This document shows, in pieces, positions 187-63,707 of a stretch of 64,000 bases of DNA. Position 1 is the stretch's first letter; each line of letters opens with the position of its first letter. The position numbers and the translations under genes are program-made. The stretch lies in the sequence record LR756502.1; one strand, 5' to 3'. Under the pieces are notes generated by a model that saw only the letters and a program-made list of their open reading frames with translations, was not told the origin of the DNA and did no database searches.

Positions 187-194
187 TATATTTG
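187..194 (+). promoter_or_regulatory. Bacteroidota-type -7 promoter element TAnnTTTG
   Basis: TATATTTG with TTTG at 161-164 as a possible -33 element; heads the long + strand run of small ORFs. Confidence 0.6.
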
Positions 195-294
195 CTTATG
201 GATAATGATAATATAGGTTTCGAAATAAACTACAAGATTAAAAACCATAAAAAATCGCTTAACTAATCTTATCAATAAAAGAATACGGATAAAA

Positions 295-810
295 ATGAAT
301 GAAGTAATGAAATCGTTAACGAATATAGATATTGAGTGTCAATTAATGTCAGATATTGAATTACACTTGATTGTTACTAAATTACAAAAAGGTAATGATG
401 AGTTTATTTACCCTGTATATCCATCAAATGGGGACTACAATGGTCTTTTGCATACTGAGATTGGACGTTGTATGTTGGTTAAATATGGTGATAAGGTATC
501 TAAGTGTGAGAATATGATTATAGATATAAATAATATCTTATTAGATTTGAGTGATGAGGGGTTTCTTGTCACTGTTGGTTTTGCTCCAAATACTATAATT
601 TGTAGGGATGAATCTCCTAAGATAGTGGTTGATGTTGTCTCAACTATTAGTGCTATGAATTTTTCTTTTACTGAGTATATTGGTATATTAACTAGAGTTA
701 AGAGTTATGTTACGGGTGAGGGGTATGTTTTTGGTGATGGGTTTAACCCACCATCAATTGGTAGAGATCCTGATAGTTTATTAATGGATTATAAAATGTT
801 AATACAATAA
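295..810 (+). CDS. Untagged member of the DILxDLxDxG paralog family
   Basis: INNILLDLSDEGFLV...FSFTEYIGILTRVKSYVTGEGY matches the domain of N-tagged genes; no MKHL tag. Confidence 0.65.
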   Translation: MNEVMKSLTNIDIECQLMSDIELHLIVTKLQKGNDEFIYPVYPSNGDYNGLLHTEIGRCMLVKYGDKVSKCENMIIDINNILLDLSDEGFLVTVGFAPNTIICRDESPKIVVDVVSTISAMNFSFTEYIGILTRVKSYVTGEGYVFGDGFNPPSIGRDPDSLLMDYKMLIQ

Positions 811-813
811 GAG

Positions 814-1167
814 ATGAAACTTTATTCAGTTAGTACTGAGGACCTTAAAAAGGAACTACAAAGGAGAGAATCAGATCCAGGTATTTGGAGTGTTATAAAA
901 TATCTTCGTGATGATAGATCTCGTAGATATAATGAACCAAAGTATATCCATTTGATTGAAGATTCAAATGGTGTTCAAGTTGAAGTACAATTAGTTGGAA
1001 ATATTTATAATAAAGATTTAAATGATAAGCAACCAACTTGTAGTGATGATGAGCCTAATTGGGATAGTGATTGGGATGATTATGATGAATATTCAATTCA
1101 ATACTTCATCGGTAAGAAGGTAAGGATAGATTCATTTGACCCTCTCAAAATAAGTGAAATAATATAG
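814..1167 (+). CDS. Hypothetical acidic protein
   Basis: 117 aa ORF in a tightly packed operon; Asp-rich C-terminal half. Confidence 0.7.
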   Translation: MKLYSVSTEDLKKELQRRESDPGIWSVIKYLRDDRSRRYNEPKYIHLIEDSNGVQVEVQLVGNIYNKDLNDKQPTCSDDEPNWDSDWDDYDEYSIQYFIGKKVRIDSFDPLKISEII

Positions 1168-1175
1168 ATATTAAA

Positions 1176-1550
1176 ATGGAAAAAGAATTTGTACCATATG
1201 AACAAGCATTGGCTCTTAAAGAATTAGGGTTTGATGAGCCTTGTTTATCTAAATATGATAATGAAGGTATGTTTTATAATAATATACTTAATCGTAGTTC
1301 AATTACGGGGCAAGTTGCATCACCATTATACCAACAAGCATTTAGATGGTTTGAAGATAACCAATCAATGTTTGTTGAAAGAATAGTTATCACAAATGTT
1401 AATGAAGTAACGGGTATTGAATATAATATAAAATCGTGGAAATTTACACCCATAACAATTGAGTTTAATAATCCTTATGATAGTTTTGATAAGAATAAAG
1501 CGGAACTAAAATGTCTTAAAAGATTAATAGAAATAGTTAAAAATAAATAA
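1176..1550 (+). CDS. Conserved Bacteroidota-phage-type hypothetical protein
   Basis: MEKEFVPYEQALALKELGFDEPC...PLYQQAFRWF pattern, recalled from Flavobacteria-type phage small proteins. Confidence 0.55.
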   Translation: MEKEFVPYEQALALKELGFDEPCLSKYDNEGMFYNNILNRSSITGQVASPLYQQAFRWFEDNQSMFVERIVITNVNEVTGIEYNIKSWKFTPITIEFNNPYDSFDKNKAELKCLKRLIEIVKNK

Positions 1551-1555
1551 AATAA

Positions 1556-3390: not shown

Positions 3391-3420
3391 AAAAAAACGA
3401 ACGGATTTTAGTATAATGAG
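3391..3420 (+). repeat. 29-bp direct repeat, copy 1 (gene-start element)
   Basis: AAAAAACGAACGGATTTTAGTATAATGAG; copy 2 at 3655-3683 differs at one position. Confidence 0.85.
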
Positions 3421-3654: not shown

Positions 3655-3683
3655 AAAAAACGAACGAATTTTAGTATAATGAG
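3655..3683 (+). repeat. 29-bp direct repeat, copy 2
   Basis: AAAAAACGAACGAATTTTAGTATAATGAG, ending on the ATG of 3679. Confidence 0.85.
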
Positions 3684-3978
3684 TATAATGAGGGAGGAGT
3701 ATATATCATATTATGTTTGTGTAGGGGCCGATCAAGTGGATATGTTATTTTTCGACTCTTATAAAATAAAACGTGGTGATATATTTGAGTATCATGGATA
3801 TGTCACGGATGGTTATCCGGAACCTGTATCATTTCGTGTTCAACATGAAGATTACATTAAGTTAAGGAATAAGGATACTGGTATGGATGACTACTATCTT
3901 TTTAGGAATTTTATATCGGTACAAGATTTAAGGAATAGTAAACTAATAGAATTAGGAATAGAATTAGGAATAGAATGA
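3679..3978 (+). CDS. C-tail small protein
   Basis: Ends RNSKLIELGIELGIE; 12-bp unit ATAGAATTAGGA tandem at 3946-3976. Confidence 0.7.
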   Translation: MSIMREEYISYYVCVGADQVDMLFFDSYKIKRGDIFEYHGYVTDGYPEPVSFRVQHEDYIKLRNKDTGMDDYYLFRNFISVQDLRNSKLIELGIELGIE

Positions 3979-4262
3979 GAATAGAAGAACTTTATAGGAT
4001 AAATCCAGAATTAGATCCAAATTACTTTTCATCTTTGCTGCCGGGTCAAGAGATATCTGAATGTATATCTGCTGTAGTTGATTATTGTATTGAGAATAAA
4101 ACCTCAGCAACTCTTTCATTTAATGGGATTATTAATAGGGTTGAATCTTGGATTGATCCAAAAGAATTAGCTAACGTTTGGTATAGCAGACCAACCGAGA
4201 TATGGTATCAATCACAAAGATCATTAATGAGGAATCATAAAATAAAGGAGTTGGGAATATAA
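3975..4262 (+). CDS. C-tail small protein
   Basis: Ends RNHKIKELGI; ATGA overlap. Confidence 0.7.
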   Translation: MRIEELYRINPELDPNYFSSLLPGQEISECISAVVDYCIENKTSATLSFNGIINRVESWIDPKELANVWYSRPTEIWYQSQRSLMRNHKIKELGI

Positions 4263-4264
4263 AT

Positions 4265-4588
4265 ATGTTATTTGCTAAGAAGAGGTTTAGATCGAAGTGT
4301 ATTAATAATAAGTACATGGACTTTGGTAGTCATACTGGGTTTACGGAGAGGGAGAGTATCTACGGTCATTTAGTTGTTGGTGATTGGTATGATTTTGAGG
4401 TTGATGATAATGGTAGGGCTTGTATTGTATCAAATGATTTAAAATATTATAATGGATATTTCTTTTATAGTAGGGAAGATATAAATTCAAGATATCATTC
4501 GGGAATTGCATCACATATAGATTTCTATCTTTTCTTTGAATCGATAGATGGTATTAGAAATAGTAAATTAGAATCTATAGGGATATGA
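4265..4588 (+). CDS. C-tail SH3-like protein, paralog of 50591-50935
   Basis: CINNKYMDFGSHTGF; ends RNSKLESIGI. Confidence 0.7.
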   Translation: MLFAKKRFRSKCINNKYMDFGSHTGFTERESIYGHLVVGDWYDFEVDDNGRACIVSNDLKYYNGYFFYSREDINSRYHSGIASHIDFYLFFESIDGIRNSKLESIGI

Positions 4589-4791
4589 AAGTATTGTGTG
4601 TAAATATATTGCCATTTACGGTTGGTATTGAGGTAGGGGTTGAGTATGAACTTATGAGAGAATTTTATAGCGGTGATAATCTTATGTATATTATAAAAAT
4701 AAGTGAGGTATCTAGTGGAACATATACGGCTTCTCAGTTCAAGGGGATTGATGAGATAAGGCAAGAGAAATTAGAATCTATGGGGATATGA
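4585..4791 (+). CDS. C-tail SH3-like protein (xVxC family)
   Basis: MKVLCV...GVEYEL; ends RQEKLESMGI. Confidence 0.7.
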   Translation: MKVLCVNILPFTVGIEVGVEYELMREFYSGDNLMYIIKISEVSSGTYTASQFKGIDEIRQEKLESMGI

Positions 4792-5162
4792 GTTTTATTA
4801 TATTTATATACTCATTTCTAATATTGATCTTTGTTATAATGACGATGATTGTTATCAGGAAAACAAACCCTCATATCCTAAGGATGAGGATTAGAAGGAT
4901 AAGCCTGAAGAAGTTTATAAAGATGTATCTTATAATGTTGGTTATATTATTACTTATATCTTATAAGTCAAATAAAATTGAGGAGTATCCAGTATTAAAT
5001 TATGTTGATGCAATTGCACTAACAAGTATTATATCATATATGGTAATACTTAGAGGTGTGACTAATGAGGTTACGGTAGAAGAACGTGATTATATAAATG
5101 ATAATAGAGTATCTTTGGATAGGGACTATAAGATAAACAAGATACTTAAAAATAGAAGATAA
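4788..5162 (+). CDS. C-tail membrane protein (3 TM)
   Basis: Three hydrophobic segments; ends RDYKINKILKNRR. Confidence 0.7.
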   Translation: MSFIIFIYSFLILIFVIMTMIVIRKTNPHILRMRIRRISLKKFIKMYLIMLVILLLISYKSNKIEEYPVLNYVDAIALTSIISYMVILRGVTNEVTVEERDYINDNRVSLDRDYKINKILKNRR

Positions 5163-5163
5163 G

Positions 5164-5466
5164 ATGAAAGACGTAGTAATTAATGAATCTACATTTCCTT
5201 TATCAAATGGTGAATTTGGTAAGATAGCTATATTTATGTATACTGGTGATAGTGATCCAAGACCAATATTGGAGAACGCTATAGCTTACTATGTTGGTGA
5301 TAGTGAAGTTCCATATCATACATTTATAGATTCTCAATTGAATATTCCATGGATGATTACGCTAATAAGTAATATCGGTGATATGGATTACTCTATGTAT
5401 AATGGTGAGACAATGACTCAATTATTTAGGAATGATAGGTTAAATAGAATATTAGGTGAAAAATAA
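5164..5466 (+). CDS. C-tail small protein
   Basis: Ends RNDRLNRILGEK. Confidence 0.7.
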   Translation: MKDVVINESTFPLSNGEFGKIAIFMYTGDSDPRPILENAIAYYVGDSEVPYHTFIDSQLNIPWMITLISNIGDMDYSMYNGETMTQLFRNDRLNRILGEK

Positions 5467-5692
5467 AATGATACAAAAGGTGAAAATTAGAGATTGGATA
5501 GAAAATAAAACATCAGGACGAGTACCACCTCCACCGACCAATCCATCAAAAAGATATCAAGATATGAATGAGGAGATTCTTATCAATGATATGTTAAAAA
5601 GGATTGGTCTTGATAGAGAGGATCTTAAACATATGAAACCAAGTGAATTAAAAGCCAGAATAAGAGATAATAAATTAGATTCAATATTATAA
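5456..5692 (+). CDS. C-tail small protein
   Basis: PPPP stretch; ends RDNKLDSIL. Confidence 0.7.
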   Translation: MKNKMIQKVKIRDWIENKTSGRVPPPPTNPSKRYQDMNEEILINDMLKRIGLDREDLKHMKPSELKARIRDNKLDSIL

Positions 5693-5928
5693 TGTTTAAA
5701 GTTGGTGATAGAGTAAAGAGAAAGAACCATAACTATAGACACACTGAAGGGTGTGAGGTTATAAACTTAAATAACATTTTCTTCACTGACCGCATAATGG
5801 TTAGAGATTATGATATGCCAATGGAGAATAGCGTTGGATGTTTTGTAGAGACTTGGGTAAGGGTAACTGACTTAGTTGATGATTTGGATGGTTATAGAGA
5901 TAGACAATTAAATAAATTAGGAATATGA
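5692..5928 (+). CDS. C-tail KOW/SH3-like protein
   Basis: MFKVGDRV; ends RDRQLNKLGI. Confidence 0.7.
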   Translation: MFKVGDRVKRKNHNYRHTEGCEVINLNNIFFTDRIMVRDYDMPMENSVGCFVETWVRVTDLVDDLDGYRDRQLNKLGI

Positions 5929-6398
5929 TTGATATTGTTAGCTTATATGATTCGAATGATAGATTAACTAAATGGGATAGTGAGTCATATATAATTATAA
6001 CTCGTGGAGTATCAGAAGAAAGGGTATTAGTCAAAAAAAACATGCCATCTATAATGTTACATGAGATCGATGATTATATAAGAACCTGGGGATGTACGAT
6101 GTATGATATTTCATCCTGGGTGGACATGAGCACATATAAATCCTTTAATAATAGTATTTTTTGGTCAGGTCTTTTATTTGTAAGAATAGATATAAATACT
6201 TATCATACTGATATGATAAGCTTGGATTCATCTAATTGGTTTGATTATAAAAAGGAGAGTTTTAGATATAGATTTGATGAGTGGGTAGAAAGGACATCTA
6301 ATGCTTTAATATCAAATGGGAAAGATAATATACCACTTAAAAGGGAAATACATTTAAGATCTTTATTAAAAGATACAAAAAAAATAAACGAATTTTAG
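5925..6398 (+). CDS. C-tail protein
   Basis: REIHLRSLL near the C-terminus. Confidence 0.65.
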   Translation: MIDIVSLYDSNDRLTKWDSESYIIITRGVSEERVLVKKNMPSIMLHEIDDYIRTWGCTMYDISSWVDMSTYKSFNNSIFWSGLLFVRIDINTYHTDMISLDSSNWFDYKKESFRYRFDEWVERTSNALISNGKDNIPLKREIHLRSLLKDTKKINEF

Positions 6399-6406
6399 TA
6401 TATTTG
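6399..6406 (+). promoter_or_regulatory. Bacteroidota-type TAnnTTTG promoter
   Basis: TATATTTG in the intergenic gap before the C-tail gene run 6431-9302. Confidence 0.6.
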
Positions 6407-6430
6407 TATTAAAATGCGTAAGAAGATAAT

Positions 6431-6802
6431 ATGATTAGTGTTAGTATAAATGATTTTATTGGATTAAAGGTTGGTGATAAGTTCAACAATCTATCAATCT
6501 TTACAGACCAACCTTATCCAGGGTTATCAGTATCAGATTGGAATTGGAAACAAATCGAGGATGAAGTCCGACCTGGAACATATCCTATAGACCAGCAGTT
6601 TCTGAAAGCTCCATTTATAGTTCCAATTGGTACATTGTTTGAGGTAGTTTATATTCATAACTTTGTAGATGCTAAACACGTTCATTTTACTTATATAAGT
6701 GATGGTGTAGAATATAGTAGTTGGTTTTCGGTTGGATCACTTAACTCAAGATCATGTTTTATGAACTTCAGAGTTAATAATTTAGAAAAACTAGGAATAT
6801 GA
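6431..6802 (+). CDS. C-tail protein
   Basis: Ends RVNNLEKLGI. Confidence 0.7.
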   Translation: MISVSINDFIGLKVGDKFNNLSIFTDQPYPGLSVSDWNWKQIEDEVRPGTYPIDQQFLKAPFIVPIGTLFEVVYIHNFVDAKHVHFTYISDGVEYSSWFSVGSLNSRSCFMNFRVNNLEKLGI

Positions 6803-7071
6803 AATTAGTTTGTATAAAAGAATTTGGTAAATATGAAGTAGGTAAACACTATGAATACTGGACAAACTTTGGTGGTCTTAATCATATTGTAAAAGACTAT
6901 GATGGTGATACTTATCCATTTGATGGTCGTTGTGCAAGCTACGATCGACCATATGTTTTTGAATACTTTCAAATACTTGATGAATATAGAGATAATCAAT
7001 TAGATAAAATAATGAGAAATCCTGTTTGGGTAGAGGTAGTAAATGATAAAATAAGTAAAATTTTAGAATGA
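6799..7071 (+). CDS. C-tail SH3-like protein (xVxC family)
   Basis: MKLVCIK..VGKHYE; RDNQLDKIM followed by a second tail-like NDKISKILE. Confidence 0.7.
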   Translation: MKLVCIKEFGKYEVGKHYEYWTNFGGLNHIVKDYDGDTYPFDGRCASYDRPYVFEYFQILDEYRDNQLDKIMRNPVWVEVVNDKISKILE

Positions 7072-7319
7072 GAGTAGTTTGTATTAATGACACATATGGT
7101 AATTCCAGACATTTAGAATTATATAAGGTATATGATACTATTGATTCACAAGATGTTTCGAGATACGGATATTATACGGTATACTCAACTACTTATATTA
7201 ATCCCCTTCATAAAATGGGTCTTATTGAAGAGTTAAAGCAAATATGTGTTAATAAGAGGTGTTTTACAACATTAGAGGAATATAGAAGTAATAAAATTAA
7301 TAAACTATTAAATGATTAG
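7068..7319 (+). CDS. C-tail SH3-like protein (xVxC family)
   Basis: MRVVCIND; ends RSNKINKLLND. Confidence 0.7.
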   Translation: MRVVCINDTYGNSRHLELYKVYDTIDSQDVSRYGYYTVYSTTYINPLHKMGLIEELKQICVNKRCFTTLEEYRSNKINKLLND

Positions 7320-7647
7320 AAGAATATTTGATATGATTACAATAGCTTTTAATCCAAACTACTGGCTTATGAACTATAAATATTGTGATGTATGGGACAA
7401 AAAGCTGAATAAGCTTATGAATGAAAATGAATTTGTTATGTATGATATGCGGTATACCTGTGAATTGGGTGATTCTGTCATTTGGGTATCGAATCACCCA
7501 TATGCATCATTCATAGAATATAATACCTTCAATAAAGAAGTAAGAGCATCCAGATTAACAATAATAAAGGCTAATCGTAAATTTAATTATGATATTAAGT
7601 CAATTGAAGATAAGAGAGATATTAGGCTAAATAAGCTAATCAAATAA
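7312..7647 (+). CDS. C-tail protein
   Basis: Ends RDIRLNKLIK. Confidence 0.7.
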   Translation: MIRRIFDMITIAFNPNYWLMNYKYCDVWDKKLNKLMNENEFVMYDMRYTCELGDSVIWVSNHPYASFIEYNTFNKEVRASRLTIIKANRKFNYDIKSIEDKRDIRLNKLIK

Positions 7648-7688
7648 AGCAGATAGTTGTGAATATTAAAATAAACAAATAAATAAAA

Positions 7689-7874: not shown

Positions 7875-8035
7875 TGAATAAGGAACTAATACCAATACCA
7901 TCAACACTAAGTACTGCTAAAAAAGCAGGATATGATGTTTATATTGATAATAATACAGGTGTTATTACTGTATCATTTACTAGAAAAAAAAGAATACTTA
8001 AAATTAAAAATATACAAAAAGTACTAAATAAATGA
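7874..8035 (+). CDS. Small basic protein (53 aa, not in ORF track)
   Basis: MNKELIP...KVLNK; TAATG and ATGA overlaps at the two ends. Confidence 0.55.
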   Translation: MNKELIPIPSTLSTAKKAGYDVYIDNNTGVITVSFTRKKRILKIKNIQKVLNK

Positions 8036-56276: not shown

Positions 56277-56290
56277 TTTAATATTTTTTC

Positions 56291-56298
56291 CAAAGATA
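56291..56298 (-). promoter_or_regulatory. Bacteroidota-type TAnnTTTG promoter
   Basis: TATCTTTG on the minus strand, 15 nt upstream of the ATG at 56276. Confidence 0.6.
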
Positions 56299-56355
56299 CG
56301 GAATTTTCTTAAGATGTTAAATCTAATATATAGATAATCAAAATAAATAAAAAAC

Positions 56356-56658
56356 ATGAAACAATCAAGTTGGTTTAAAACGGAAGTGGACTTTGAAAGT
56401 TCTTTCAAGTTCTGGTTCGCACTTATGTGGCAAAATTCATATATTCAACTTTTCTCTGTTGGATTCATCTTATTACTTATGGAGTTAATAAAATTTGGAT
56501 GGGTATTGGATACTGTATCTGAAAATTTCTCATATGGTGTTTTTGGTGGTATCTTCACACTATTAGGAATGGTTATACCACTTGCGGTTACTTCAGTAAT
56601 TGGGTATAAGGGATTTTATCAATTTTGGAAAGATATAAAATTTGGAAAAACTAGATAA
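56356..56658 (+). CDS. 2-TM membrane protein
   Basis: Two hydrophobic helices; TAATATATA at 56324-56332. Confidence 0.65.
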   Translation: MKQSSWFKTEVDFESSFKFWFALMWQNSYIQLFSVGFILLLMELIKFGWVLDTVSENFSYGVFGGIFTLLGMVIPLAVTSVIGYKGFYQFWKDIKFGKTR

Positions 56659-57272
56659 TGAGAAATATTAAATCATATAAAGACTTCGCTAATGAGGAAG
56701 TAAACTGGAGAAAAGGAATGGCAACCGCTGCTCTAGGCGCATCACTTGCTATGTCATCCCCATTGATTGCAAACGGTAATGAAATTATTGATAAGATTGA
56801 AAATGTGTCAAGTAAATCAAAGAACTCAAATGATGATATGTTGAATAACATATTGGGTGAGATACATTCAAATATTAAAAGTACTGATAGTGCTAAGTAT
56901 ATTGAGTTATTTGATAAGTTATCATCACATCTATCCAAAGAGTATGGTTATGAGATAATTGCTAGGGATATTCCTAAGTTGGATAAAGAGACTATGTCTG
57001 ATATGAGCTTAGCTGAGTTAATGGGTTGGTTGGGTTCTATTTGTTTAGCTATATGTGGTGTCCCACAAGCTTGGATGTCCTATAAGGATAAACATTCTGA
57101 AGGAATTTCTTGGGCCTTTATTCTATTATGGGCTTTTGGTGAAGCATTTGCTTTGGCTTATGTGTATAATAAGTTGGATTTGCCTTTAGTTATGAACTAT
57201 CTAACTAATATTTTGATTGTTGCTATTATACTTTATTATAAGATAAATCCAGGCAAGAAGTCGGATTTATAA
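56658..57272 (+). CDS. N-tagged PQ-loop (SemiSWEET-like) membrane protein
   Basis: MRNIKSYKDFANEE; C-terminal GWLGSICLAICGVPQAWMSYKDKHSEGISWAFILLW... 3-TM PQ-loop unit. Confidence 0.8.
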   Translation: MRNIKSYKDFANEEVNWRKGMATAALGASLAMSSPLIANGNEIIDKIENVSSKSKNSNDDMLNNILGEIHSNIKSTDSAKYIELFDKLSSHLSKEYGYEIIARDIPKLDKETMSDMSLAELMGWLGSICLAICGVPQAWMSYKDKHSEGISWAFILLWAFGEAFALAYVYNKLDLPLVMNYLTNILIVAIILYYKINPGKKSDL

Positions 57273-57716
57273 AGTATGTCTTGGTATCTGGTATTTTAGA
57301 TATGATATCAACATTCTAATTTCTTTTTCACTTAAAATCTTATTAAATGCCATCATTCTTGGTGCTTTGGTATCCCATTCTTTTAGAAGAGATAGTGTAT
57401 ATTTGTCCTTTTCTTTTTCTAAAATATTTATATCCTCAATTATATTATACATTTTACCAAATCCTATTCTTGTTGACAATTTAGGCCCAGCTAAATCTCT
57501 TGTAAAGGAGTGACATGCTGCACAATTTCTTCTATAAATAACTTTACCCGATTCGATCCAATCTTCAGCATCACTAACAAACATTGTATCGATCTCCTTA
57601 ATAATAGATGATGTATCTTTTTGTGAACTAATTACTACTGGTGTTTTATTTGAATTTGAAGTACATTGTCCTATTAATAGGACTGCTAATATACCAAGTA
57701 TAAGTGTCTGTTTCAT
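57267..57716 (-). CDS. Class I cytochrome c, exported or lipid-anchored
   Basis: GKVIYRRNCAACH...GPKL...RMMAF...LSEKEIRMLISY; hydrophobic leader with Cys. Confidence 0.85.
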   Translation of the reverse strand: MKQTLILGILAVLLIGQCTSNSNKTPVVISSQKDTSSIIKEIDTMFVSDAEDWIESGKVIYRRNCAACHSFTRDLAGPKLSTRIGFGKMYNIIEDINILEKEKDKYTLSLLKEWDTKAPRMMAFNKILSEKEIRMLISYLKYQIPRHTL

Positions 57717-57717
57717 A

Positions 57718-58110
57718 TTAATATACTCTTACTTTTATACATTGTTGTGAGTTTGGTGATAATGTACCGGTCGCTATATTACCAACCGCGTCAATAACCT
57801 CCCAATCTATGCTTGATCCGCTGAAAAATTGATATTCTATACATCCACCTGCTGAGCAATTACCTGGTCCATATGGATAGTATGATGTTATGTTTCCGTA
57901 TAATGTGCCATTTATATAAATGGTTAGTGGTGGAAAGTTAGCTGGAGAGCTAACATAAAATATAGCTGTGGAGAATTGACATGAACCATCATTTTTATCT
58001 GCTTGATAATCATAGTTTATTGCTCTTGTGTCGGTACATCCCCTTTTATTATTACACCCACCGATTAATATGATTGTAAATAGGAATATTAAATTGAATA
58101 TTTTTTTCAT
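57718..58110 (-). CDS. Lipoprotein with a GCTD...DGSC module
   Basis: Lipobox LIGGC; GCTDTRAINYDYQADKNDGSC, typical of Bacteroidota surface proteins. Confidence 0.7.
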   Translation of the reverse strand: MKKIFNLIFLFTIILIGGCNNKRGCTDTRAINYDYQADKNDGSCQFSTAIFYVSSPANFPPLTIYINGTLYGNITSYYPYGPGNCSAGGCIEYQFFSGSSIDWEVIDAVGNIATGTLSPNSQQCIKVRVY

Positions 58111-58153
58111 GTTATTTATATCTAAATAATCTAAATTGTTTTATATATAGACT

Positions 58154-58597
58154 ATGAAATATCTATGTAGATACAAAGTATTTGAGTCCTTCAATGAAGA
58201 CCCGTCATCTGATATTGCATTGGAGGTAAAGGATGTACTGTGTGATTTGATTGATGATAATTACTTTACAGTAAATGTCGCATATAACAAATTAGGTGAT
58301 ATAAACCTTATAATAAGTATTTATAAGGAGGGGTTTAAGAGGTTTAAATGGACTGATAGTTTAAGTGATGAAATATTGGTTAATCTCAAATCTCACTTAT
58401 CGGATAGGTACTCAATAAAATCTATTAGAGGTATTATTGAAGTTGATGCAGTATTAAATGGTAACGGAGATTCATATAATCCTGTTAAAGAGTTTACGGT
58501 ATATTCATCCGGATATAGCCCTGATCCCGACTCATATAACTTTGATTTTTTTGAGATTGATGTGTATTTGGCGGAGAATAAATTACTCTCCGCCTAA
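58154..58597 (+). CDS. N-tagged DILxDLxDxG-family protein
   Basis: MKYLCRYKVFES; VKDVLCDLIDDNY...FKWTD. Confidence 0.7.
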   Translation: MKYLCRYKVFESFNEDPSSDIALEVKDVLCDLIDDNYFTVNVAYNKLGDINLIISIYKEGFKRFKWTDSLSDEILVNLKSHLSDRYSIKSIRGIIEVDAVLNGNGDSYNPVKEFTVYSSGYSPDPDSYNFDFFEIDVYLAENKLLSA

Positions 58598-58606
58598 CCT
58601 GAATAA

Positions 58607-59281
58607 TTATTTAGTTTTTATTAAAATTTCATCAACCATTCCATAGGCCTTAGCCTCTTCTGCTGTCATCCAATAATCTCTATCACTATCTGCCCAAACT
58701 TTATCATATGTTTGTCCACTGTGCTCGGCGATAATGTCATATAATTCCTTTTTTAATTTTTGAATTTCGCGAGCGGTTATTTCAATATCTGTTGCTTGTC
58801 CACTAGCTCCACCAAGTGGTTGGTGAATCATTACTCGCGAATGTTTAAGTGCTGCTCTTTTTCCTTTAGTTCCAGCACACATTAAAACAGCTCCCATTGA
58901 CGCAGCCATACCTGTGCATATAGTTGCAACATCTGGTGTTATGTATTGCATAGTATCGTAGATACCAAGTCCAGCATAAACTGAACCACCTGGGCTATTT
59001 AAATATATTTGAATATCTTTTTTAGCATCAACAGATTGTAGGAATAATAGTTGTGCTTGGATAATGTTTGCTACTTGGTCGTCAATTCCGGTCCCTAGGA
59101 AAATAACTCTATCCATCATTAGTCTAGAGAATACATCCATCTGAGTTATATTCAACTGGCGTTCCTCGATGATGTAAGGTGTTACATTTGAAATGTTGTG
59201 TTTTGTGTATGAGTCAAAGGTATTTCCGTTGATACCTTTATGCTTTGTGGCATACTTTCTAAATTCATTGTTATCGAACAT
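58607..59281 (-). CDS. clpP: ATP-dependent Clp protease proteolytic subunit (Bacteroidota-type)
   Basis: TPYIIEERQLN..MDVFSRLMMDR, NSPGGSV, GMAASMG (Ser), MIHQP (His) and DRDYWM (Asp). Confidence 0.97.
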   Translation of the reverse strand: MFDNNEFRKYATKHKGINGNTFDSYTKHNISNVTPYIIEERQLNITQMDVFSRLMMDRVIFLGTGIDDQVANIIQAQLLFLQSVDAKKDIQIYLNSPGGSVYAGLGIYDTMQYITPDVATICTGMAASMGAVLMCAGTKGKRAALKHSRVMIHQPLGGASGQATDIEITAREIQKLKKELYDIIAEHSGQTYDKVWADSDRDYWMTAEEAKAYGMVDEILIKTK

Positions 59282-59387
59282 ATTTCTTATTTAGGTTTAT
59301 TTTTATTATTTTTTCTTATTCATGTCATATATCATAATCAAATAAATAATTATGGATGAAAATACTATGATGTAGGTTGTCATTTAT

Positions 59388-59660
59388 TTAAAGTTTATTT
59401 TCTAATTCATCGTAAATAAAATAATTTAGACTACTTTCAAAGTCTTGACCATCCTTAAGTGATGGGTTTAGGTGGTGGTATATTTCGTGATATACTGTTC
59501 TGGTACTAAACAGGTCCTTGTTAAGGTAGATTTTTCTAAATGGGAATTCTACATATAAACCACGATAGTTTACGTCAGAAGTAAAGTATGCTTTTACTGA
59601 CAGGGCTTTATACTTTGTACAAAGATTATCATATAATTTTTGAATTTCGTTTAGTTCCAT
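59388..59660 (-). CDS. Small HExxH zincin-like protein (tentative)
   Basis: RTVYHEIYHHL. Confidence 0.5.
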   Translation of the reverse strand: MELNEIQKLYDNLCTKYKALSVKAYFTSDVNYRGLYVEFPFRKIYLNKDLFSTRTVYHEIYHHLNPSLKDGQDFESSLNYFIYDELENKL

Positions 59661-59664
59661 TCTA

Positions 59665-59672
59665 CAAATGTA
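59665..59672 (-). promoter_or_regulatory. Bacteroidota-type TAnnTTTG promoter
   Basis: TACATTTG, 4 nt upstream of the ATG at 59660; lies within the hairpin TTCTAC-AAAT-GTAGAA. Confidence 0.45.
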
Positions 59673-59697
59673 GAAAAAAAGTTTTAATAAAACTAAT

Positions 59698-59967
59698 TTA
59701 TAGATACTTTATTTGTTTTAGGTCTCCACTTGGTAGGTTCTGTCCTATGAATTCACCAGATTCAAATCCAAGGTCAGTATTCATCTTACTCACAAATATC
59801 TGTGGGGTTTTACCAGAGTCTCTGAATGATAATATTTCATCCTCATATTGATTAACGATTTTATTTATATCGTTTGGACTAAGGTTATGCTTTTTAAGTC
59901 CTGATATTACATCTTCAATATACTCTTGTTTTGTCCAGTATGATTCGTAGGTTTTTATATACTTCAT
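59698..59967 (-). CDS. N-tagged small protein
   Basis: MKYIKTYES; TAATATATA upstream. Confidence 0.65.
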   Translation of the reverse strand: MKYIKTYESYWTKQEYIEDVISGLKKHNLSPNDINKIVNQYEDEILSFRDSGKTPQIFVSKMNTDLGFESGEFIGQNLPSGDLKQIKYL

Positions 59968-59984
59968 ATGGTATATATTAATAG

Positions 59985-60203
59985 TTATCTTACTATTTCT
60001 ATTCCTATTTTGGTTTTACCGTAGTTTATATTTACCCAATCCATTTCAAGGTATTTCTCACCAGGATCAGGATATCCCATATCTCGCCATTTCTCAACAA
60101 GTCTATATTCTTGTTCCCTTGTGTAGTATTTAAGCCAGATAAAATTTCCAAATATTTTTTTTGGTAGATATGCGAAAAGTTTAATAATTCTTGTCTCGTT
60201 CAT
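59985..60203 (-). CDS. Hypothetical protein
   Basis: KLFAYLPKK...IWLKYY. Confidence 0.6.
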   Translation of the reverse strand: MNETRIIKLFAYLPKKIFGNFIWLKYYTREQEYRLVEKWRDMGYPDPGEKYLEMDWVNINYGKTKIGIEIVR

Positions 60204-60211
60204 TTTCTTAA

Positions 60212-60799
60212 TTAAAATTTTGGTTTAGCTTTTTGACGTGCAGATTTTTTAAAAAGTTTTTTGATTTTCTTTTTAACTTTATCTCCCCAAAAAAGTGACC
60301 ACTTGGCTTTACCATTTAAATTTACATAAGGTTTCATTTCGTTTTCATTTTTTTCTTTAATAGGTTCCTTTTTTTCTTCTAATACCTTATTTATTTTATC
60401 ATCCCTATATTCCGATATATCAATTCCTTTTAGTATATTATCCATAACAATATCTTGGTTTGATACCTTTAGCTTTGGCTTTATTTCATTTATATATATC
60501 CATTCTAATATTTTCTTAACTGGATATCTTGACATAGACATAAATGCTTTGCCATCCAACATATTTGGATTGTTTATGGTAACTGATCCATCATTTAAAT
60601 AAAATCCATTAGCTACATTAGCTGAATTTGTATCTAGTTCAATTCTACAATCAAATTTAGTTATACCATCTAGTGATATTGACTCATATCTATGAGTAGT
60701 GTCATTATTGAAGAAGCTATTAGATAGTGTCCATTTTAATGATCCATTTATGGTTGCTTTATATATGCTATCTATAATAGCTAGTAATTTTTTGTCCAT
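60212..60799 (-). CDS. Protein with an internal C-tail motif and basic extension
   Basis: RDDKINKVLEE followed by a Lys-rich tail. Confidence 0.65.
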   Translation of the reverse strand: MDKKLLAIIDSIYKATINGSLKWTLSNSFFNNDTTHRYESISLDGITKFDCRIELDTNSANVANGFYLNDGSVTINNPNMLDGKAFMSMSRYPVKKILEWIYINEIKPKLKVSNQDIVMDNILKGIDISEYRDDKINKVLEEKKEPIKEKNENEMKPYVNLNGKAKWSLFWGDKVKKKIKKLFKKSARQKAKPKF

Positions 60800-60820
60800 T
60801 GTAGTTTAACTTTATTTATA

Positions 60821-60828
60821 CAAATATA
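60821..60828 (-). promoter_or_regulatory. Bacteroidota-type TAnnTTTG promoter
   Basis: TATATTTG on the minus strand, upstream of 60799. Confidence 0.6.
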
Positions 60829-60874
60829 AGAATTATTTTTAATATTCAAATAATCAAAATAAATATATACTCAT

Positions 60875-61393
60875 ATGAAGTACATAGAACTATTCGAAAG
60901 ATTTTATAACCCAAGTAAAGATATAAAAGATAAATTAGACTCTATAATTAAAGATTTATTGAATAGGTATAAGGGAGGTAAGTCGTTTTTTGATGCTCTT
61001 GATGATTCTATAAAGGATATAACTAATCAGGATATGACTCTTGCTTTATTAAGGGGTAATACAAATGAGTGGATTGCAACATCCGGTGAGTTTGGTGATA
61101 CGATATATAAGCTATGGAAGTCTGGTAAGTTTAGGTGTAAGGGTTTGGTTGTATTTAATGGTAAGATGATGACAAATGAAATTGGTATTAATAATTGGTA
61201 CCCAATTGACTTTGAATTAGATAATAAGGAGTTTTTATATGTAGATGACTCTTATTTCTCTGGCAGTACTGCTAGAAAAATTGATAACTTCCTAAGTGAG
61301 TATAACTCAAGAGTTAAAAGCATATCTGTTATATATGATGGATCCAAGGAAAAAAATAAAATGGTTAAGTCCTTTTTTAGATATTATAAATGA
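60875..61393 (+). CDS. N-tagged type I phosphoribosyltransferase-like protein
   Basis: MKYIELFER; FLYVDDSYFSGSTA matches the PRPP-binding loop. Confidence 0.7.
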   Translation: MKYIELFERFYNPSKDIKDKLDSIIKDLLNRYKGGKSFFDALDDSIKDITNQDMTLALLRGNTNEWIATSGEFGDTIYKLWKSGKFRCKGLVVFNGKMMTNEIGINNWYPIDFELDNKEFLYVDDSYFSGSTARKIDNFLSEYNSRVKSISVIYDGSKEKNKMVKSFFRYYK

Positions 61394-62259
61394 AATACTT
61401 AAATAAATATAAATTATTTGAGTCAGAACAATCTTATTATGATAGAATTGAGGCTGAACAAGAAGAACTTAATAAATTCAAATATGGATCTGTTAAGGTT
61501 TGGGCTAAAGAGATATATGATAAGTTTAGAAAAGTAGAGTCTGAGATTGCATCAAAGATGATAAATGTTGATGGATCTGAGGTCTATCTGGCTAATAATT
61601 CACAACATTCTATAAAACTTGGATTCGGACGTAGCTATACTAAACTGAACTCTCTTATAGATAAATATAAAACCGCAGAAGGTCTTATATCCTATCTAGA
61701 AAAGGCAAATGATGAGATTAATAACATAAGAAAATCACTCGAAGGCCGATGGGATTATATTTCTAGAAAGAATGGTAAAAAAGGAACATCTGATGAGTAT
61801 GATAAGATAAAAAGGATGAGAGAGTTGATGGATGATTTTCAAGAACCATGGTCTATTTACAGAGAGCTAAAACAAGTTGACTTGGACATTTATCATGATA
61901 TTCTTTGGATGGTATCTGATTTAGCTGATGATTTAGATATGGAATCTGCAATTTCACACCTTGAGTTATGGAGAGGACTCGATATTCAATTAATTATGTT
62001 TAAGAAAGGAACCGAACCATATATTGAATGGGTGGTCGCGAATCATCAACAGACCACAAAGGGTAATATTAGTTTTAGAAAACTTGGATCTCTCTATACA
62101 AATGTATTTCTATCTAATATAATTATACCTGAGGATGAATTTAATAAAGTTTATGATATTGAGAATAGATTAAAACAATACTTCGATTCTGTTACAATAA
62201 GATATTCTCATAATAGATCTTGTATCTATATTAATCTCTGTAATCAAAAGGACATATAA
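61390..62259 (+). CDS. N-tagged helical protein
   Basis: MKYLNKYKLFES; coiled-coil-like N-terminal half. Confidence 0.65.
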   Translation: MKYLNKYKLFESEQSYYDRIEAEQEELNKFKYGSVKVWAKEIYDKFRKVESEIASKMINVDGSEVYLANNSQHSIKLGFGRSYTKLNSLIDKYKTAEGLISYLEKANDEINNIRKSLEGRWDYISRKNGKKGTSDEYDKIKRMRELMDDFQEPWSIYRELKQVDLDIYHDILWMVSDLADDLDMESAISHLELWRGLDIQLIMFKKGTEPYIEWVVANHQQTTKGNISFRKLGSLYTNVFLSNIIIPEDEFNKVYDIENRLKQYFDSVTIRYSHNRSCIYINLCNQKDI

Positions 62260-62552
62260 TGAAATACTTAAATACATATAAATTATTTGAGAGTATCTCC
62301 AAATATCCTGATGGGTTTGGTCGGTATTTAGATAACGATGATATACAAGATTCTCTTCAATATGATATAGGTGACATGGTTTGGGTTAGAGATTGGAGTG
62401 ATGTGCCATGTCAGGTTATGGATATAAAGGTTGGTGTGGATGTGTCTGGTAGTCCACACAATGAAATATTAGTATACTTTTACTATGTTAGAAATTCAGA
62501 GACAGAAGAAATAGAAAGGTTTAGATCATTTAAATTAAGTGAAATAGAATGA
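62259..62552 (+). CDS. N-tagged KOW/SH3-like protein
   Basis: MKYLNTYKLFES; YDIGDMVWV. Confidence 0.65.
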   Translation: MKYLNTYKLFESISKYPDGFGRYLDNDDIQDSLQYDIGDMVWVRDWSDVPCQVMDIKVGVDVSGSPHNEILVYFYYVRNSETEEIERFRSFKLSEIE

Positions 62553-63091
62553 AGTACTTAAAGACATACTCCTTATATAAAATACTTGAGAGCACTTTAA
62601 CAGATGTTAATTTTCCAAATGCTGAGGAAAAAATAAAAGACATATTGTCATATTTGATTGATGATGAGTTTTCTATAGATGTTGACTCTTATGAATTGGG
62701 TGAGTTCCAAAGGCTGCCATCCAGAATTTTATTAAACATACCAGAGTCTATAACTCAAAACATGGAATGGGATCCACTACCAATTCTAGTTATTATTATT
62801 GAATATTTTGATAATCAAGTGGAAACACAAAGAACATTCACAATTGATGAAATTGACCAACACATAAAAGAGTTAATTAATCAAATGAGTGATGATTATA
62901 CATTTTTTCAATATTGGAAGTCTTATTCAGAGAGTACTAATTTAAATTTAAAATTAATTGGTGATTATTCTAAATGGTGTTCAAATATTGATAAGGTGTC
63001 TGAAGGTGATGATTGTGAGTTAAACTACATAAGACTAGAATTTATAAAAAATACTAATCTAGTGTCAAAATCCACAAATTCCATCCAATAA
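62549..63091 (+). CDS. N-tagged DILxDLxDxG-family protein
   Basis: MKYLKTYSLYKILES; IKDILSYLIDDEF...FTIDEIDQHIKELINQM. Confidence 0.7.
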   Translation: MKYLKTYSLYKILESTLTDVNFPNAEEKIKDILSYLIDDEFSIDVDSYELGEFQRLPSRILLNIPESITQNMEWDPLPILVIIIEYFDNQVETQRTFTIDEIDQHIKELINQMSDDYTFFQYWKSYSESTNLNLKLIGDYSKWCSNIDKVSEGDDCELNYIRLEFIKNTNLVSKSTNSIQ

Positions 63092-63620
63092 CAATAACTG
63101 AGTGTATTGTCTCTGGTATTGCCATTCCCGGAAAAAATTTTAATGCTATTAACGGACCAACAACCATAGCAACTGCAAATGTTGTATGTGTCTGCCATTC
63201 TTTATATTGTAGGTGCTTTCTATTAAGATGAGCAAATAAGAAAACTATTAGTGGGTAAGCGAAGAAGTAAAGATACGCAGTGACATTATGAATATCGTGT
63301 GTCATATCTACTACTCCGGTGATAAATAAAAATGTGGATGTTAGTATAAATCCTAACTTTAGAAAGTTTGTATATCTTTCATGTAAACGTGTGTGATGTT
63401 TTATAAAAAGCATTACATTTATAAGAATAGAGACTGATAATATAGCGACACAGCTATTCCATATCCATCCTAGTTTCTTATCAACTCCCCAGAATGAAAG
63501 TTGAATATCTGTAAGCTTAAACTCAGTAACATTATAGCATAGTATGAATACTCCAATGAAAAGAAATATTGAAATGATGGTCTGCCACCTTCTAAACTTT
63601 TTAATATCAGAAATATCCAT
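63054..63620 (-). CDS. Multi-pass membrane protein (DUF998-like, tentative)
   Basis: 5-6 TM helices; LSFWG...HNVTAYLYF. Confidence 0.55.
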   Translation of the reverse strand: MDISDIKKFRRWQTIISIFLFIGVFILCYNVTEFKLTDIQLSFWGVDKKLGWIWNSCVAILSVSILINVMLFIKHHTRLHERYTNFLKLGFILTSTFLFITGVVDMTHDIHNVTAYLYFFAYPLIVFLFAHLNRKHLQYKEWQTHTTFAVAMVVGPLIALKFFPGMAIPETIHSVIVIGWNLWILTLD

Positions 63621-63659
63621 ATACCTTGTTATACTTAAATTTAGTATTTATGTTACATA

Positions 63660-63667
63660 CAAATATA
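63660..63667 (-). promoter_or_regulatory. Bacteroidota-type TAnnTTTG promoter
   Basis: TATATTTG on the minus strand. Confidence 0.55.
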
Positions 63668-63707
63668 CTGATTTTAATTTAAACAATAAAACAATAATAT
63701 ATAGTAT

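Follow-up and report, generated by a model that had tools for sequence, protein, structure and literature searches.

Genes of a huge phage whose proteins start with a shared 11-residue tag (N-tag) sit almost only behind an AT-rich promoter of phage type (class L), while genes whose proteins end in a shared tail (C-tail) sit mostly behind host-type Bacteroidota promoters (class E). The window analyzed here, bases 1-64000 of LR756502.1 (64,000 nucleotides), belongs to a 642-kb "Mahaphage" that is predicted to infect Bacteroidetes and has one of the largest known phage genomes. The pattern was found in the window, in the rest of the genome, and in independent IMG/VR contigs of related phages.

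Two promoter classes and their segregation with the protein tags

An earlier note made from the sequence alone had claimed that TAnnTTTG heads runs containing C-tail or untagged genes, whereas an AT-rich motif usually lies within about 5-30 nt of N-tagged starts. This observation proved to be real and stronger than stated. All the sites named for TAnnTTTG and for the AT-rich motif (TAATATATA and TAAATATATA) were present in the window. To measure enrichment, a check that the note itself had named, we compared the counts with shuffled DNA. As a bare 8-mer, TAnnTTTG is not enriched in the window (103 against 88.7+-8.3). However, in sense orientation in upstream gaps it was found at 11 run-heading genes against 2.2+-1.5 in 1000 dinucleotide shuffles. 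TAATATATA was enriched overall (26 against 13.65+-3.7, 0/100 shuffles), and WWWTATATA ending 3-10 nt before a start codon was found at 26 run heads against 3.1+-1.6. The latter motif preceded 23/28 N-tagged run-heading genes against 3/41 others (Fisher 1.5e-10), while TAnnTTTG preceded 0/28 against 11/41 (p=0.002).

The E-class sites in the window are as follows.

187-194 (+): core (TATATTTG; PWM 12.5), 100 nt upstream of gene 295-810; heads the + strand run of untagged and C-tail genes
6399-6406 (+): core (PWM 18.0), 24 nt before C-tail gene 6431-6802
34074-34081 (-): core, 37 nt before 33896-34036; heads the run down to 32777, which includes two C-tail genes
39839-39846 (-): core, 25 nt before the re-called start of C-tail gene 39595-39813; the run continues through riboflavin kinase (C-tail) and Dam methyltransferase
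48047-48054 (-): core, 3 nt before the ATG of 47531-48043 (leaderless-type spacing)
49541-49548 (-): core, 19 nt before 48907-49521, with an L motif between it and the ATG
54733-54740 (-): core, 18 nt before secreted-protein gene 54211-54714
56291-56298 (-): core (TATCTTTG), 14 nt before the re-called start of 55713-56276
59665-59672 (-): core (TACATTTG), 4 nt before 59388-59660 (leaderless-type); the run includes ClpP 58607-59281
60821-60828 (-): core with TTTG 18 nt upstream, 21 nt before 60212-60799
63660-63667 (-): core, 39 nt before 63054-63620

The L-class sites in the window are as follows.

10922-10930 (-): 4 nt before a vestigial 13-codon tag ORF (10876-10917), followed by N-tag genes 10332-10865 and 10195-10332
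11107-11116 (+): TAAATATATA, 5 nt before N-tag gene 11122
11724-11733 (+): 5 nt before N-tag gene 11739
12518-12526 (+): 6 nt before N-tag gene 12533; heads six coupled N-tag genes up to 15566
15602-15610 (+): 7 nt before N-tag gene 15618
19504-19512 (+): 7 nt before N-tag gene 19520
21699-21707 (-): 6 nt before N-tag gene 20622-21692
23584-23592 (-): 6 nt before N-tag gene 22663-23577
25114-25129 (both strands): two overlapping, palindromic, divergent promoters (25114-25122 on -, 25121-25129 on +), each 5 nt before an N-tag gene (24005-25108 and 25135-25572)
26694-26702 (-): 18 nt before N-tag-variant gene 26328-26675
27214-27222 (-): 5 nt before N-tag gene 26717-27208
28040-28048 (+): variant (TTATATATA), 4 nt before N-tag gene 28053
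28915-28924 (+): 5 nt before ATG 28930; the tag begins 6 codons later at 28948
30954-30962 (+): 4 nt before N-tag gene 30967
32271-32279 (+): 5 nt before N-tag gene 32285
34137-34145 (+): 8 nt before N-tag gene 34154; back to back with the E promoter at 34074
36035-36043 (-): 5 nt before N-tag gene 35553-36029
36078-36086 (+): 26 nt before N-tag gene 36113
39891-39899 (+): 9 nt before N-tag gene 39909; back to back with the E promoter at 39839
40383-40392 (+): 20 nt before untagged 40413, followed by three N-tag genes 40802-42517
42525-42533 (+): 5 nt before the untagged GGACT-family gene 42539-42883
44113-44121 (+): 5 nt before N-tag gene 44127
49529-49537 (-): motif, 7 nt before untagged 48907-49521 (an E motif is also present)
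49591-49599 (+): variant (TTATATATA), 4 nt before N-tag gene 49604
49910-49918 (+): 23 nt before untagged signal-peptide gene 49942
51404-51412 (+): 27 nt before untagged 51440, followed by N-tag gene 51733
52882-52890 (-): 4 nt before untagged 52014-52877; a hairpin terminator lies just upstream at 52915-52944
54767-54775 (+): variant, 6 nt before N-tag gene 54782-55264 (start re-called); back to back with the E promoter at 54733
56324-56332 (+): 23 nt before membrane-protein ORF 56356-56658, followed by N-tag-variant gene 56658
58141-58149 (+): variant, 4 nt before N-tag gene 58154
59972-59980 (-): 4 nt before N-tag gene 59698-59967
60860-60869 (+): 5 nt before N-tag gene 60875; heads four N-tag genes up to 63091; back to back with the E promoter at 60821
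63695-63703 (+): 4 nt before 63708, a SAM-methyltransferase with a variant N-tag that runs off the window

The tagged genes are grouped in the following arrays and runs.

11122-16154 (+): 10 N-tag genes (MK[HY]LKx[YF]..FE[S])
20622-27208 (both strands): N-tag genes, six on - (20622-25108), one on + (25135-25572) and three on - (25633-27208)
28053-32773 (+): 9 N-tag genes
34154-37263 (both strands): five N-tag genes (34154-35556 on +, 35553-36029 on -, 36113-37263 on +)
3679-9302 (+): run rich in C-tail genes (R[DN]xKLxx[LI]GI or a looser KLxxLL end), many overlapping the next ATG (GGAATATGA)
16217-20520 (+): second run of C-tail genes, interrupted by N-tag gene 19520-20068; no own E motif found
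27238-28000 (-): two C-tail genes, with only a one-mismatch E-like TTATATTTA upstream
50268-51386 (-): three C-tail genes headed by a weak E-like site (PWM 9.4)

At the level of transcription units over the whole genome, PWM calls placed N-tag genes in 110 L units and 2 E units, with none in both and 14 without a call, and C-tail genes in 10 L units and 67 E units, with 2 in both and 64 without a call (odds ratio of N-tag against C-tail 368, p=1.5e-37). These figures rest on our own gene calls, tag patterns and transcription-unit walking, and on PWMs trained on the sites they score. Outside the window, the values were 63 L against 2 E for the N-tag and 49 E against 3 L for the C-tail. We then examined 71 IMG/VR loci, fragments of related phages whose terminase, portal and capsid proteins reach about 76% identity. 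In genes that were not used to select these loci, L was found at 25/44 N-tag heads against 55/456 others (p=5e-11).

Some details of the note required correction. The usual distance from the L motif to the ATG is 4-9 nt, with a second mode at 18-27 nt, rather than 5-30 nt. About 45% of the C-tail genes (64 of 143) have no callable promoter, and in the window seven of them (16217-20520) simply lie downstream of an N-tag/L run. The link between C-tail and E is a strong tendency and not a rule. The two exceptions that the note had listed, the GGACT gene at 42539 and the gene at 49942, are real.

Promoter architecture, gp55-like sigma factor and nature of the N-tag

The E class has the bipartite form of Bacteroidota sigma-A promoters. 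The 86 sites examined showed a T/G-rich -33 element, with TTTG about 17-19 nt upstream of a TATATTTGT core, matching the published -33/-7 consensus and its spacing of 4-5 nt to the transcription start (PMC6847099). E units carry NAD salvage, NUDIX, ligase, ClpP and aminoacyl-tRNA synthetase genes. In contrast, the L class (tTAATATATA) is a single element with no conserved position upstream of it and a bimodal distance to the ATG. It heads the portal, baseplate hub, a peptidase and tail-fibre genes, and close variants, which fall below our strict PWM threshold, head the capsid, protease, sheath and terminase genes. However, L-like variants also precede DnaB, topoisomerase II, SbcC and RNR/DNA-polymerase units, so L may cover middle as well as late genes and is better called the phage-specific class than strictly late. 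The L core is conserved at orthologous positions in LR745206 while the flanks diverge, and it is conserved upstream of the portal gene in LR756504 and LR756501.

A search of the genome for a late sigma factor identified a gp55-like gene at record positions 217128-217493 (local HMM, E=1.1e-4; phrog_234, "late sigma transcription factor," 9.7e-6; HHalign 96%, E=3.9e-9). The only PDB hit was 7d7c_F, gp55. The protein has 121 aa against 185 aa and lacks the C-terminal third, but its ortholog in LR745206 is 92.6% identical, above the 54-81% of the other orthologous proteins in that locus. The core genes are also T4-like, with a Gp23 capsid protein (PF07068), a portal and a protease (phrog_207), although the match of the prohead protease to Peptidase_S77 is below the Pfam threshold.

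The N-tag sits on otherwise unrelated proteins. Once the tag was trimmed, 101/126 tagged proteins had no BLAST partner, and the cargo includes lysozyme, SET, GNAT, HNH and SAM-methyltransferase domains. Codons within the tag vary synonymously, and the tag is present on promoter-less genes inside runs. Position 4 is L/I in 100% and position 7 is Y/F in 98%, while a Glu appears in residues 8-12 in 90% against 28% of untagged proteins.

Interpretation and alternative readings

The interpretation offered in the note, that C-tail genes are early and driven by host RNA polymerase while N-tag genes are late and virion-bound, is partly supported. What the data show directly are the motifs, their placement and segregation, their conservation across the clade and the gp55-like gene, while the polymerase form that reads each class, the timing, packaging, cleavage and the role of the C-tail are inferred from sequence alone. 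Our preferred explanation, held with moderate confidence, is that of a T4-related huge phage of a Bacteroidota host that uses two promoter languages. In this view, class E would be the host housekeeping sigma-A promoter, read by the unmodified host RNA polymerase and driving small host-takeover and auxiliary genes, including most C-tail genes. Class L would be a T4-late-type promoter, most likely read by host core polymerase carrying the gp55-like factor, driving virion genes and essentially all N-tag genes. In both classes the motif lies either 3-8 nt before the ATG, which implies a leaderless mRNA given the host spacing, or about 15-30 nt before it. The N-tag (M-K-H/Y-L/I-K-x-Y/F, then Glu within residues 8-12, usually followed by Ser) would be a protein-level signal that most likely docks the protein in the prohead core and is cut off after Glu by the gp21-like prohead protease; that it makes these proteins virion-bound rests only on analogy with the T4 capsid targeting sequence, and 126-215 different packaged proteins would be without precedent. 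The C-tail would be a second short protein-level motif marking early proteins, our best guess being a docking or degradation peptide.

The most serious alternative, possible but less likely, is that L is simply a general (middle plus late) promoter and that the N-tag serves another purpose, such as recognition by a chaperone or protease or efficient initiation on leaderless mRNAs. Besides the L-like variants at replication and nucleotide-metabolism units, this would fit the leaderless spacing of 50 of 57 L-headed N-tag genes against 46 of 100 untagged ones, a mild C-ending bias at tag codon 3, the presence of ClpP and an ATP-dependent protease, and the lack of a significant sequence match to the T4 capsid targeting sequence. 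However, half of the N-tag genes are inside runs and translationally coupled yet keep the tag, the conserved Glu followed by a small residue fits a prohead-protease site, and the strict L motif heads the portal, hub and tail genes. It is unlikely that the link merely reflects hitch-hiking, with N-tag genes as one fast-evolving paralogue family in which each copy carried along its promoter and first codons. Many window copies do share identical first 15 bases, full-length BLAST joins 36 of 126 into one cluster, the genes are tandemly arrayed, and turnover is fast, as the window has no DNA-level counterpart in the closest relative except ClpP. Against this stand the singletons left after trimming, the unrelated Pfam domains, the tags kept without promoter inside runs, the synonymous codon and conservative residue variation, the L motif at untagged virion genes, and the persistence of tag and motif in relatives whose portal protein is only 38% identical.

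Two further readings appear very unlikely. The AT-rich motif could be an RNA-level or translational element tied to the start codon, since it ends 4-8 nt before the ATG at most N-tag genes, but it has a second sharp mode at 18-27 nt, the E motif (a known promoter element) shows the same two modes, it is absent from coupled genes inside runs, it is conserved at both spacings in orthologous upstream regions, and it often follows a terminator hairpin. L promoters could instead be read by a phage-encoded RNA polymerase. Some jumbo phages encode their own polymerases, and three large proteins (1408, 1469 and 995 aa) had no family match. However, no RNA-polymerase family appeared in any PHROGs or Pfam scan of about 320 proteins (most of those of 230 aa or more), while the core genes are T4-like and a conserved gp55-like factor is present.

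Comparison with phage T4

We found no description of this clade-wide arrangement in the literature searched, although its components have known counterparts: host-type Bacteroidota promoters on one side and, on the other, T4 late promoters and capsid targeting. The N-tag PSSM ranked the N termini of T4 internal proteins only in the top ~10% of untagged proteins, which indicates analogy rather than detectable homology. Nevertheless, the layout of the tag matches the rules of the T4 capsid targeting sequence, namely, 10 residues, targeting at positions 4 and 7, and cleavage after L/I-x-E (PMC9026906; PMC3012670). The whole arrangement resembles an enlarged version of the timed, capsid-targeted "internal proteins" of phage T4.

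Two protein tags and their segregation with two promoter classes

LR756502.1 is an unannotated record of an uncultured phage of 642,428 bp, one of the four largest complete phage genomes of Al-Shayeb et al. 2020, which belongs to the Mahaphage clade and is predicted to replicate in Bacteroidetes (PMC7162821). The window is bases 1-64000 of this record, in the same coordinates, and has a G+C content of about 30%, about 140 small genes and no tRNA. The rest of the record was divided into twelve pieces that were analyzed separately, and a home-made codon-based gene caller gave a total of 948 genes. Two short peptides recur among the predicted proteins. The N-tag is an N-terminal M-K-(H/Y)-(L/I)-K-x-(Y/F)-...-F-E-S, while the C-tail is R-(D/N)-x-K-L-x-x-(L/I)-G-I at the very end of the protein, or a looser K-L-x-x-L-L within four residues of the end. 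With strict patterns, the genome has 126 N-tag and 143 C-tail genes, none carrying both, and a looser N pattern gives 215, so that 13 to 23% of the genes carry the N-terminal tag and about 15% the C-terminal tail.

To find out whether the tags mark protein families, we trimmed them and compared the remaining sequences by BLAST. After trimming, 101/126 N-tag and 133/143 C-tail proteins have no partner within their class. The N-tag proteins include lysozyme, SET, GNAT, HNH, Band-7, PQ-loop and Toprim domains, and a SAM-methyltransferase, while one C-tail protein is a riboflavin kinase. A search of six N-tag and three C-tail proteins against PHROGs gave no informative family. Tag codons vary synonymously, and tagged genes inside runs, which have no promoter of their own, keep the tag. 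The tags are therefore protein-level signals and not parts of a DNA motif. Only a mild C-ending bias was found at codon 3, where His and Tyr use C-ending codons more than the genome does (54% against 33%, and 49% against 22%), which hints at an extra nucleotide-level preference near the start. In GI-type tails, the last codons (GGA ATA TGA) contain the ATG of the next gene, so that the end of the tail doubles as a stop-start overlap (for example, in the window C-tail genes 3975-4791, 5692-5928 and 6431-6802).

The earlier note had claimed that the two tags segregate with two promoter classes, one with the host-type element TAnnTTTG (here class E) and one with an AT-rich element (here class L), and all the sites of both motifs that it claimed exist in the sequence. 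As the note had proposed, enrichment was tested against shuffled sequence. As a bare word, TAnnTTTG is not enriched in the window (103 against 88.7+-8.3), and only placement and orientation matter, since in sense orientation in upstream gaps it is found at 11 run-heading genes against 2.2+-1.5 in 1000 dinucleotide shuffles. WWWTATATA ending 3 to 10 nt before a start is found at 26 heads against 3.1+-1.6. Among window genes with an upstream gap of at least 10 nt, L precedes 23/28 N-tag genes and 3/41 others (p=1.5e-10), while E precedes 0/28 and 11/41 (p=0.002). However, E. coli-type sigma-70 -35/-10 sites are not enriched (136 against 147+-13), and neither are terminator-like hairpins (7 against 5.1). 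The observation of the note is thus confirmed.

Next, we extended the analysis to the whole genome using PWMs thresholded at the 98th percentile of shuffled gaps and walking up each co-directional run. The gene calls, tag patterns, transcription-unit walking and PWMs are our own, and the PWMs were trained on the sites that they score, which is offset in part by replication outside the window and in other contigs. N-tag against C-tail genes gives an odds ratio of 368 (p=1.5e-37), and C-tail against untagged genes gives 9.6 (p=1.7e-14). Outside the window alone, N-tag genes fall in 63 L against 2 E units, and C-tail genes in 49 E against 3 L units. Among heads with no call, a search for a third promoter motif recovered only weaker TATATA variants.

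Promoter class of the transcription units that hold each gene class in the whole genome
Gene class; L units; E units; both; no call
N-tag; 110; 2; 0; 14
C-tail; 10; 67; 2; 64
Untagged; 263; 184; 20; 212

To replicate the association in other phages, we scanned IMG/VR with an exact pattern consisting of the strict L motif, a gap of 4 to 8 nt and the codons for M-K-H-L-K, which found 71 loci in AT-rich viral contigs. In these loci the peptide continues with the rest of the tag, which the pattern did not specify. Among the genes of these loci that were not used for selection, L precedes 25/44 N-tag heads against 55/456 others (p=5e-11), while E precedes 2/44 against 87/456. Both distance distributions repeat, and GI-type C-tails occur. 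The loci are fragments of related phages, with terminase, portal and capsid proteins reaching about 76% identity, although portal falls to 38% in one of them (locus L071). The system is therefore a property of the clade. One contig labeled as part of a giant-virus bin (IMGVR_UViG_GVMAG-M-3300023184-139_000001) carries the L promoter and an N-tag gene, and may be a mis-binned fragment of a huge phage. In contrast, in the cultured and annotated Tenacibaculum phage PTm1 and in Lak-A1 there was no L motif before the portal, protease or capsid genes and no tags in the regions read, so the system does not reach these more distant relatives, at least in those regions. In the literature searched, no paper holds the L motif together with phage and promoter or describes the tag, and the paper reporting the genome mentions neither (PMC7162821).

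Motif anatomy and the genes behind each class

The 86 E sites share T-Y-C-B TATATTTG T, with a T-rich and then G-rich element 17 to 19 nt upstream. At positions -23 to -20 relative to the TA, T reaches 0.62 to 0.70 and then G reaches 0.31 to 0.35, and many sites read TTTGG. This is the Bacteroidota -33 TTTG / -7 TAnnTTTG promoter. Here the -33 element is weaker than the core, as also reported for Flavobacterium johnsoniae, where the transcription start lies 4 to 5 nt after the G (PMC6847099). The L sites (logos of 135 and 87 sites) carry information only in tTAATATATA, with nothing conserved upstream. Both classes have two modes of distance to the ATG, E peaking at 3 to 5 and at 15 to 40 nt and L at 4 to 8 and at 18 to 27 nt. 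The short mode puts the AUG at the expected transcript start, which implies leaderless mRNA, while the long mode would give an A-rich leader of about 15 to 20 nt. N-tag genes are mostly of the short type (50 against 6), while untagged L genes split evenly (46 against 46). That E and L share this two-mode spacing argues that L is a promoter element and not a start-codon-linked RNA signal.

The phage has a T4-like core that comprises structural genes (Gp23-family capsid protein, gp20-type portal, prohead protease, sheath, baseplate hub, and terminase) and replication and nucleic-acid genes (DNA polymerase, clamp loader, SbcCD, UvsX, topoisomerase II, RNR, and RNA ligase). The strict L motif heads the portal, baseplate hub, a peptidase and tail-fiber genes, while core variants (NAATATATA, TTATATATA, ATATATATA) head the capsid, protease, sheath and terminase genes. 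However, L-like variants also precede DnaB, SbcC, topoisomerase II and units holding RNR and DNA polymerase, and a restriction of L to late genes is therefore not established. Since in window positions 57000-64000 only ClpP matched relatives at the DNA level, footprinting had to use the structural region. In LR745206 (proteins 54 to 93% identical), the core is retained at the same distance before the portal, protease, capsid and three other orthologues, while the flanks differ, and the motif also precedes the portal gene in LR756504 and LR756501. The E units carry several NUDIX hydrolases, ligase, a tRNA synthetase, ClpP, secreted proteins and a full NAD-salvage set (nicotinamide phosphoribosyltransferase, NMN adenylyltransferase, Sir2, and PRPP synthase).

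The arrangement of the C-tail genes and of the two promoter classes showed further regularities. C-tail genes are concentrated in two divergent arrays that flank coordinate 1 of the circular genome, which looks like a bidirectional early region. E and L promoters often sit back to back in one short gap and face in opposite directions, and genome-wide there are 18 divergent E/L pairs, 16 L/L pairs and no E/E pair. The features concerned, together with others found in the window and elsewhere in the record, are as follows.

Record 602000-642428 (602-642 kb), minus strand: array of 45 C-tail genes, all on this strand
Window 1-21000 (0-21 kb), plus strand: array of 20 C-tail genes, all on this strand
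Window 34036-34154, 39813-39909, 49521-49604, 54714-54782, 60799-60875 and 63620-63708: gaps with back-to-back E and L promoters
Window 25109-25134: perfect 26-bp palindrome holding two overlapping divergent L promoters, each 5 nt before an N-tag gene
Window 10876-10917, minus strand: vestigial 13-codon ORF that starts with the N-tag, has its own L promoter (10922-10930) and lies just upstream of an intact N-tag gene, probably a decayed copy
Window 3396-3415 and 3659-3678, plus strand: 20-nt element (AACGAACGRATTTTAGTATA) abutting the ATGs of genes 3416 and 3679; a related stretch precedes the E promoter at 6399, and there are only these two exact copies in the genome
Window 52961-58110, minus strand: cluster of genes with signal-peptide or lipoprotein-type N-termini (52961, 54211, 55273, 57267, 57718), possible cell-surface modifiers; 54211 is behind an E promoter and the others have no promoter call
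Window 58607-59281, minus strand: ClpP (PF00574, 1.6e-77) in an E unit
Window 38031-39598, minus strand: riboflavin kinase carrying a C-tail, next to a Dam-type N6-adenine methyltransferase, in an E unit
Record 217128-217493: gp55-like factor of 121 aa, preceded by neither an E nor an L motif

A gp55-like factor and the tags as putative addresses

To identify a candidate reader of the L class, we searched the genome for relatives of the T4 late sigma factor. T4 gp55 alone gave no hit with phmmer against all ORFs, and a profile was needed. A profile of 120 gp55 homologues retrieved the 121-residue protein at record 217128-217493 with E=1.1e-4 among 2241 ORFs, and the same protein scores 9.7e-6 with phrog_234 (late sigma transcription factor). 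Profile-profile comparison (HHalign) gave 96% probability and E=3.9e-9 over 82 columns, and the only PDB match is chain 7d7c_F, gp55. The protein is thus a gp55 relative, although it aligns to the N-terminal 100 residues of T4 gp55 and lacks the C-terminal third. It is 92.6% identical in LR745206, the most conserved of the 15 orthologous proteins compared in that locus (the others are 54 to 81% identical), and orthologues also occur in two of the IMG/VR loci (L035 and L071). No RNA-polymerase family appeared in any PHROGs or Pfam scan of about 320 proteins, most of those of 230 aa or more, in which three large proteins of about 1000 to 1470 aa were left without assignment.

In T4, diverse internal proteins share only a 10-residue capsid targeting sequence, in which targeting depends on residues 4 and 7, and gp21 removes the peptide after L/I-x-E (PMC3012670, PMC9026906). 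Here, residue 4 is L/I in all tagged proteins and residue 7 is Y/F in 98%. Glu is present within residues 8 to 12 in 90%, against 28% of untagged proteins (p=4.5e-41), the next residue is most often Ser or another small residue, and a hydrophobic-x-E is found in 89/126. However, the N-termini of T4 ipI, ipII and ipIII, read from NC_000866, do not score significantly with the tag PSSM, ranking at 9 to 14% of untagged proteins, and this is a working likeness, not demonstrable homology. The prohead protease gene is present (phrog_207 at 6e-28), although Peptidase_S77 reaches only 4.6e-4.

The interpretation in the earlier note, that C-tail genes are early and driven by the host RNA polymerase while N-tag genes are late and virion-bound, is partly supported. 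What the analysis shows is the two motifs with their placement, segregation and recurrence in the clade, the gp55 relative, and a C-tail that is conserved at the protein level and biased toward E, whereas transcription from either motif by a given holoenzyme, its timing, the presence of N-tag proteins in the head and their trimming by the prohead protease are inferred from sequence and by analogy. For the C-tail, a clamp-binding or degradation peptide was considered, as conjecture only. Besides the ClpP of the window, the phage encodes in an L unit an ATP-dependent protease (phrog_4871, 2.6e-248), and both are candidates for tag-directed proteolysis.

A bolder reading, which we regard as doubtful although the evidence does not rule it out, is that a clade of the largest known phages packs well over a hundred different tag-addressed proteins into the capsid as an injected arsenal, comprising enzymes such as lysozyme, SET and SAM methyltransferases, an acetyltransferase and nucleases, plus many proteins with no known relatives, all made from leaderless late messages. 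In this view, the same phages would mark about 140 early proteins with a separate C-terminal peptide for a second fate, for example timed removal by their own ClpP or ATP-dependent protease, and together this would be a genome-wide two-signal system that couples when a protein is made to where it goes. The results give a working transcription map, predicted from sequence, for an uncultured 642-kb phage, with about 80 host-type and more than 180 phage-type promoters plus a gp55-like late sigma factor, and suggest that this giant follows T4 logic in a predicted Bacteroidota host. If the tags are addresses, a large share of the dark genes of the huge phages in this clade gains a first functional label, namely when each protein is made and where it probably goes, and candidate injected antidefense proteins could then be read directly from sequence.

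Comparison with known promoter and packaging systems

The E class shares with the Bacteroidota housekeeping sigma-A (sigma-ABfr) promoters the -7 core, with the two variable positions almost never G, the TTTG-like element about 17 to 19 nt upstream and the sense orientation before genes (PMC6847099). However, the extended core TATATTTGT is far more uniform than in host genes, and about a quarter of the sites put the ATG where transcription should start, while 87% of Flavobacterium johnsoniae transcripts have leaders (PMC6847099). The heavy use of leaderless-type spacing in the phage is unusual for Bacteroidota systems. The L class resembles T4 late transcription (gp55 sigma, gp33, gp45 clamp; single -10-type AT-rich promoter) in that a single AT-rich element with no -35 partner heads the virion genes and a highly conserved gp55 homologue is present. 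It differs in that the factor is only 121 aa, without the C-terminal third of gp55, and in that the predicted host is a Bacteroidota member with a divergent polymerase and sigma, and the motif is absent from the structural regions of PTm1 and Lak-A1.

Regarding the tagged proteins, the ejection and inner-body proteins of phiKZ-like and SPN3US-like giant phages include many head-internal proteins with N-terminal propeptides that a gp21-related protease removes after Glu (PMC9026906). However, those phages have about 50 head proteins and no single uniform tag, they use their own RNA polymerases, and no relationship to them was found here. Closer are the T4 internal proteins (IPI-III, Alt) with the capsid targeting sequence cleaved by the prohead protease gp21. 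The N-tag differs from this sequence in the lack of significant similarity to the T4 peptide, in the mostly leaderless arrangement of its genes and in an unprecedented scale, with at least 126 tagged genes (up to about 215 with the looser pattern) against a handful in T4, and its packaging and cleavage are inferred by analogy. In both cases, a short N-terminal peptide is shared by otherwise unrelated, fast-changing proteins, key hydrophobic residues sit at positions 4 and 7, a Glu a few residues later is followed by a small residue, the phage has gp23-type capsid, gp20-type portal and gp21-like protease genes, and the genes lie behind the phage's own late-type promoter.
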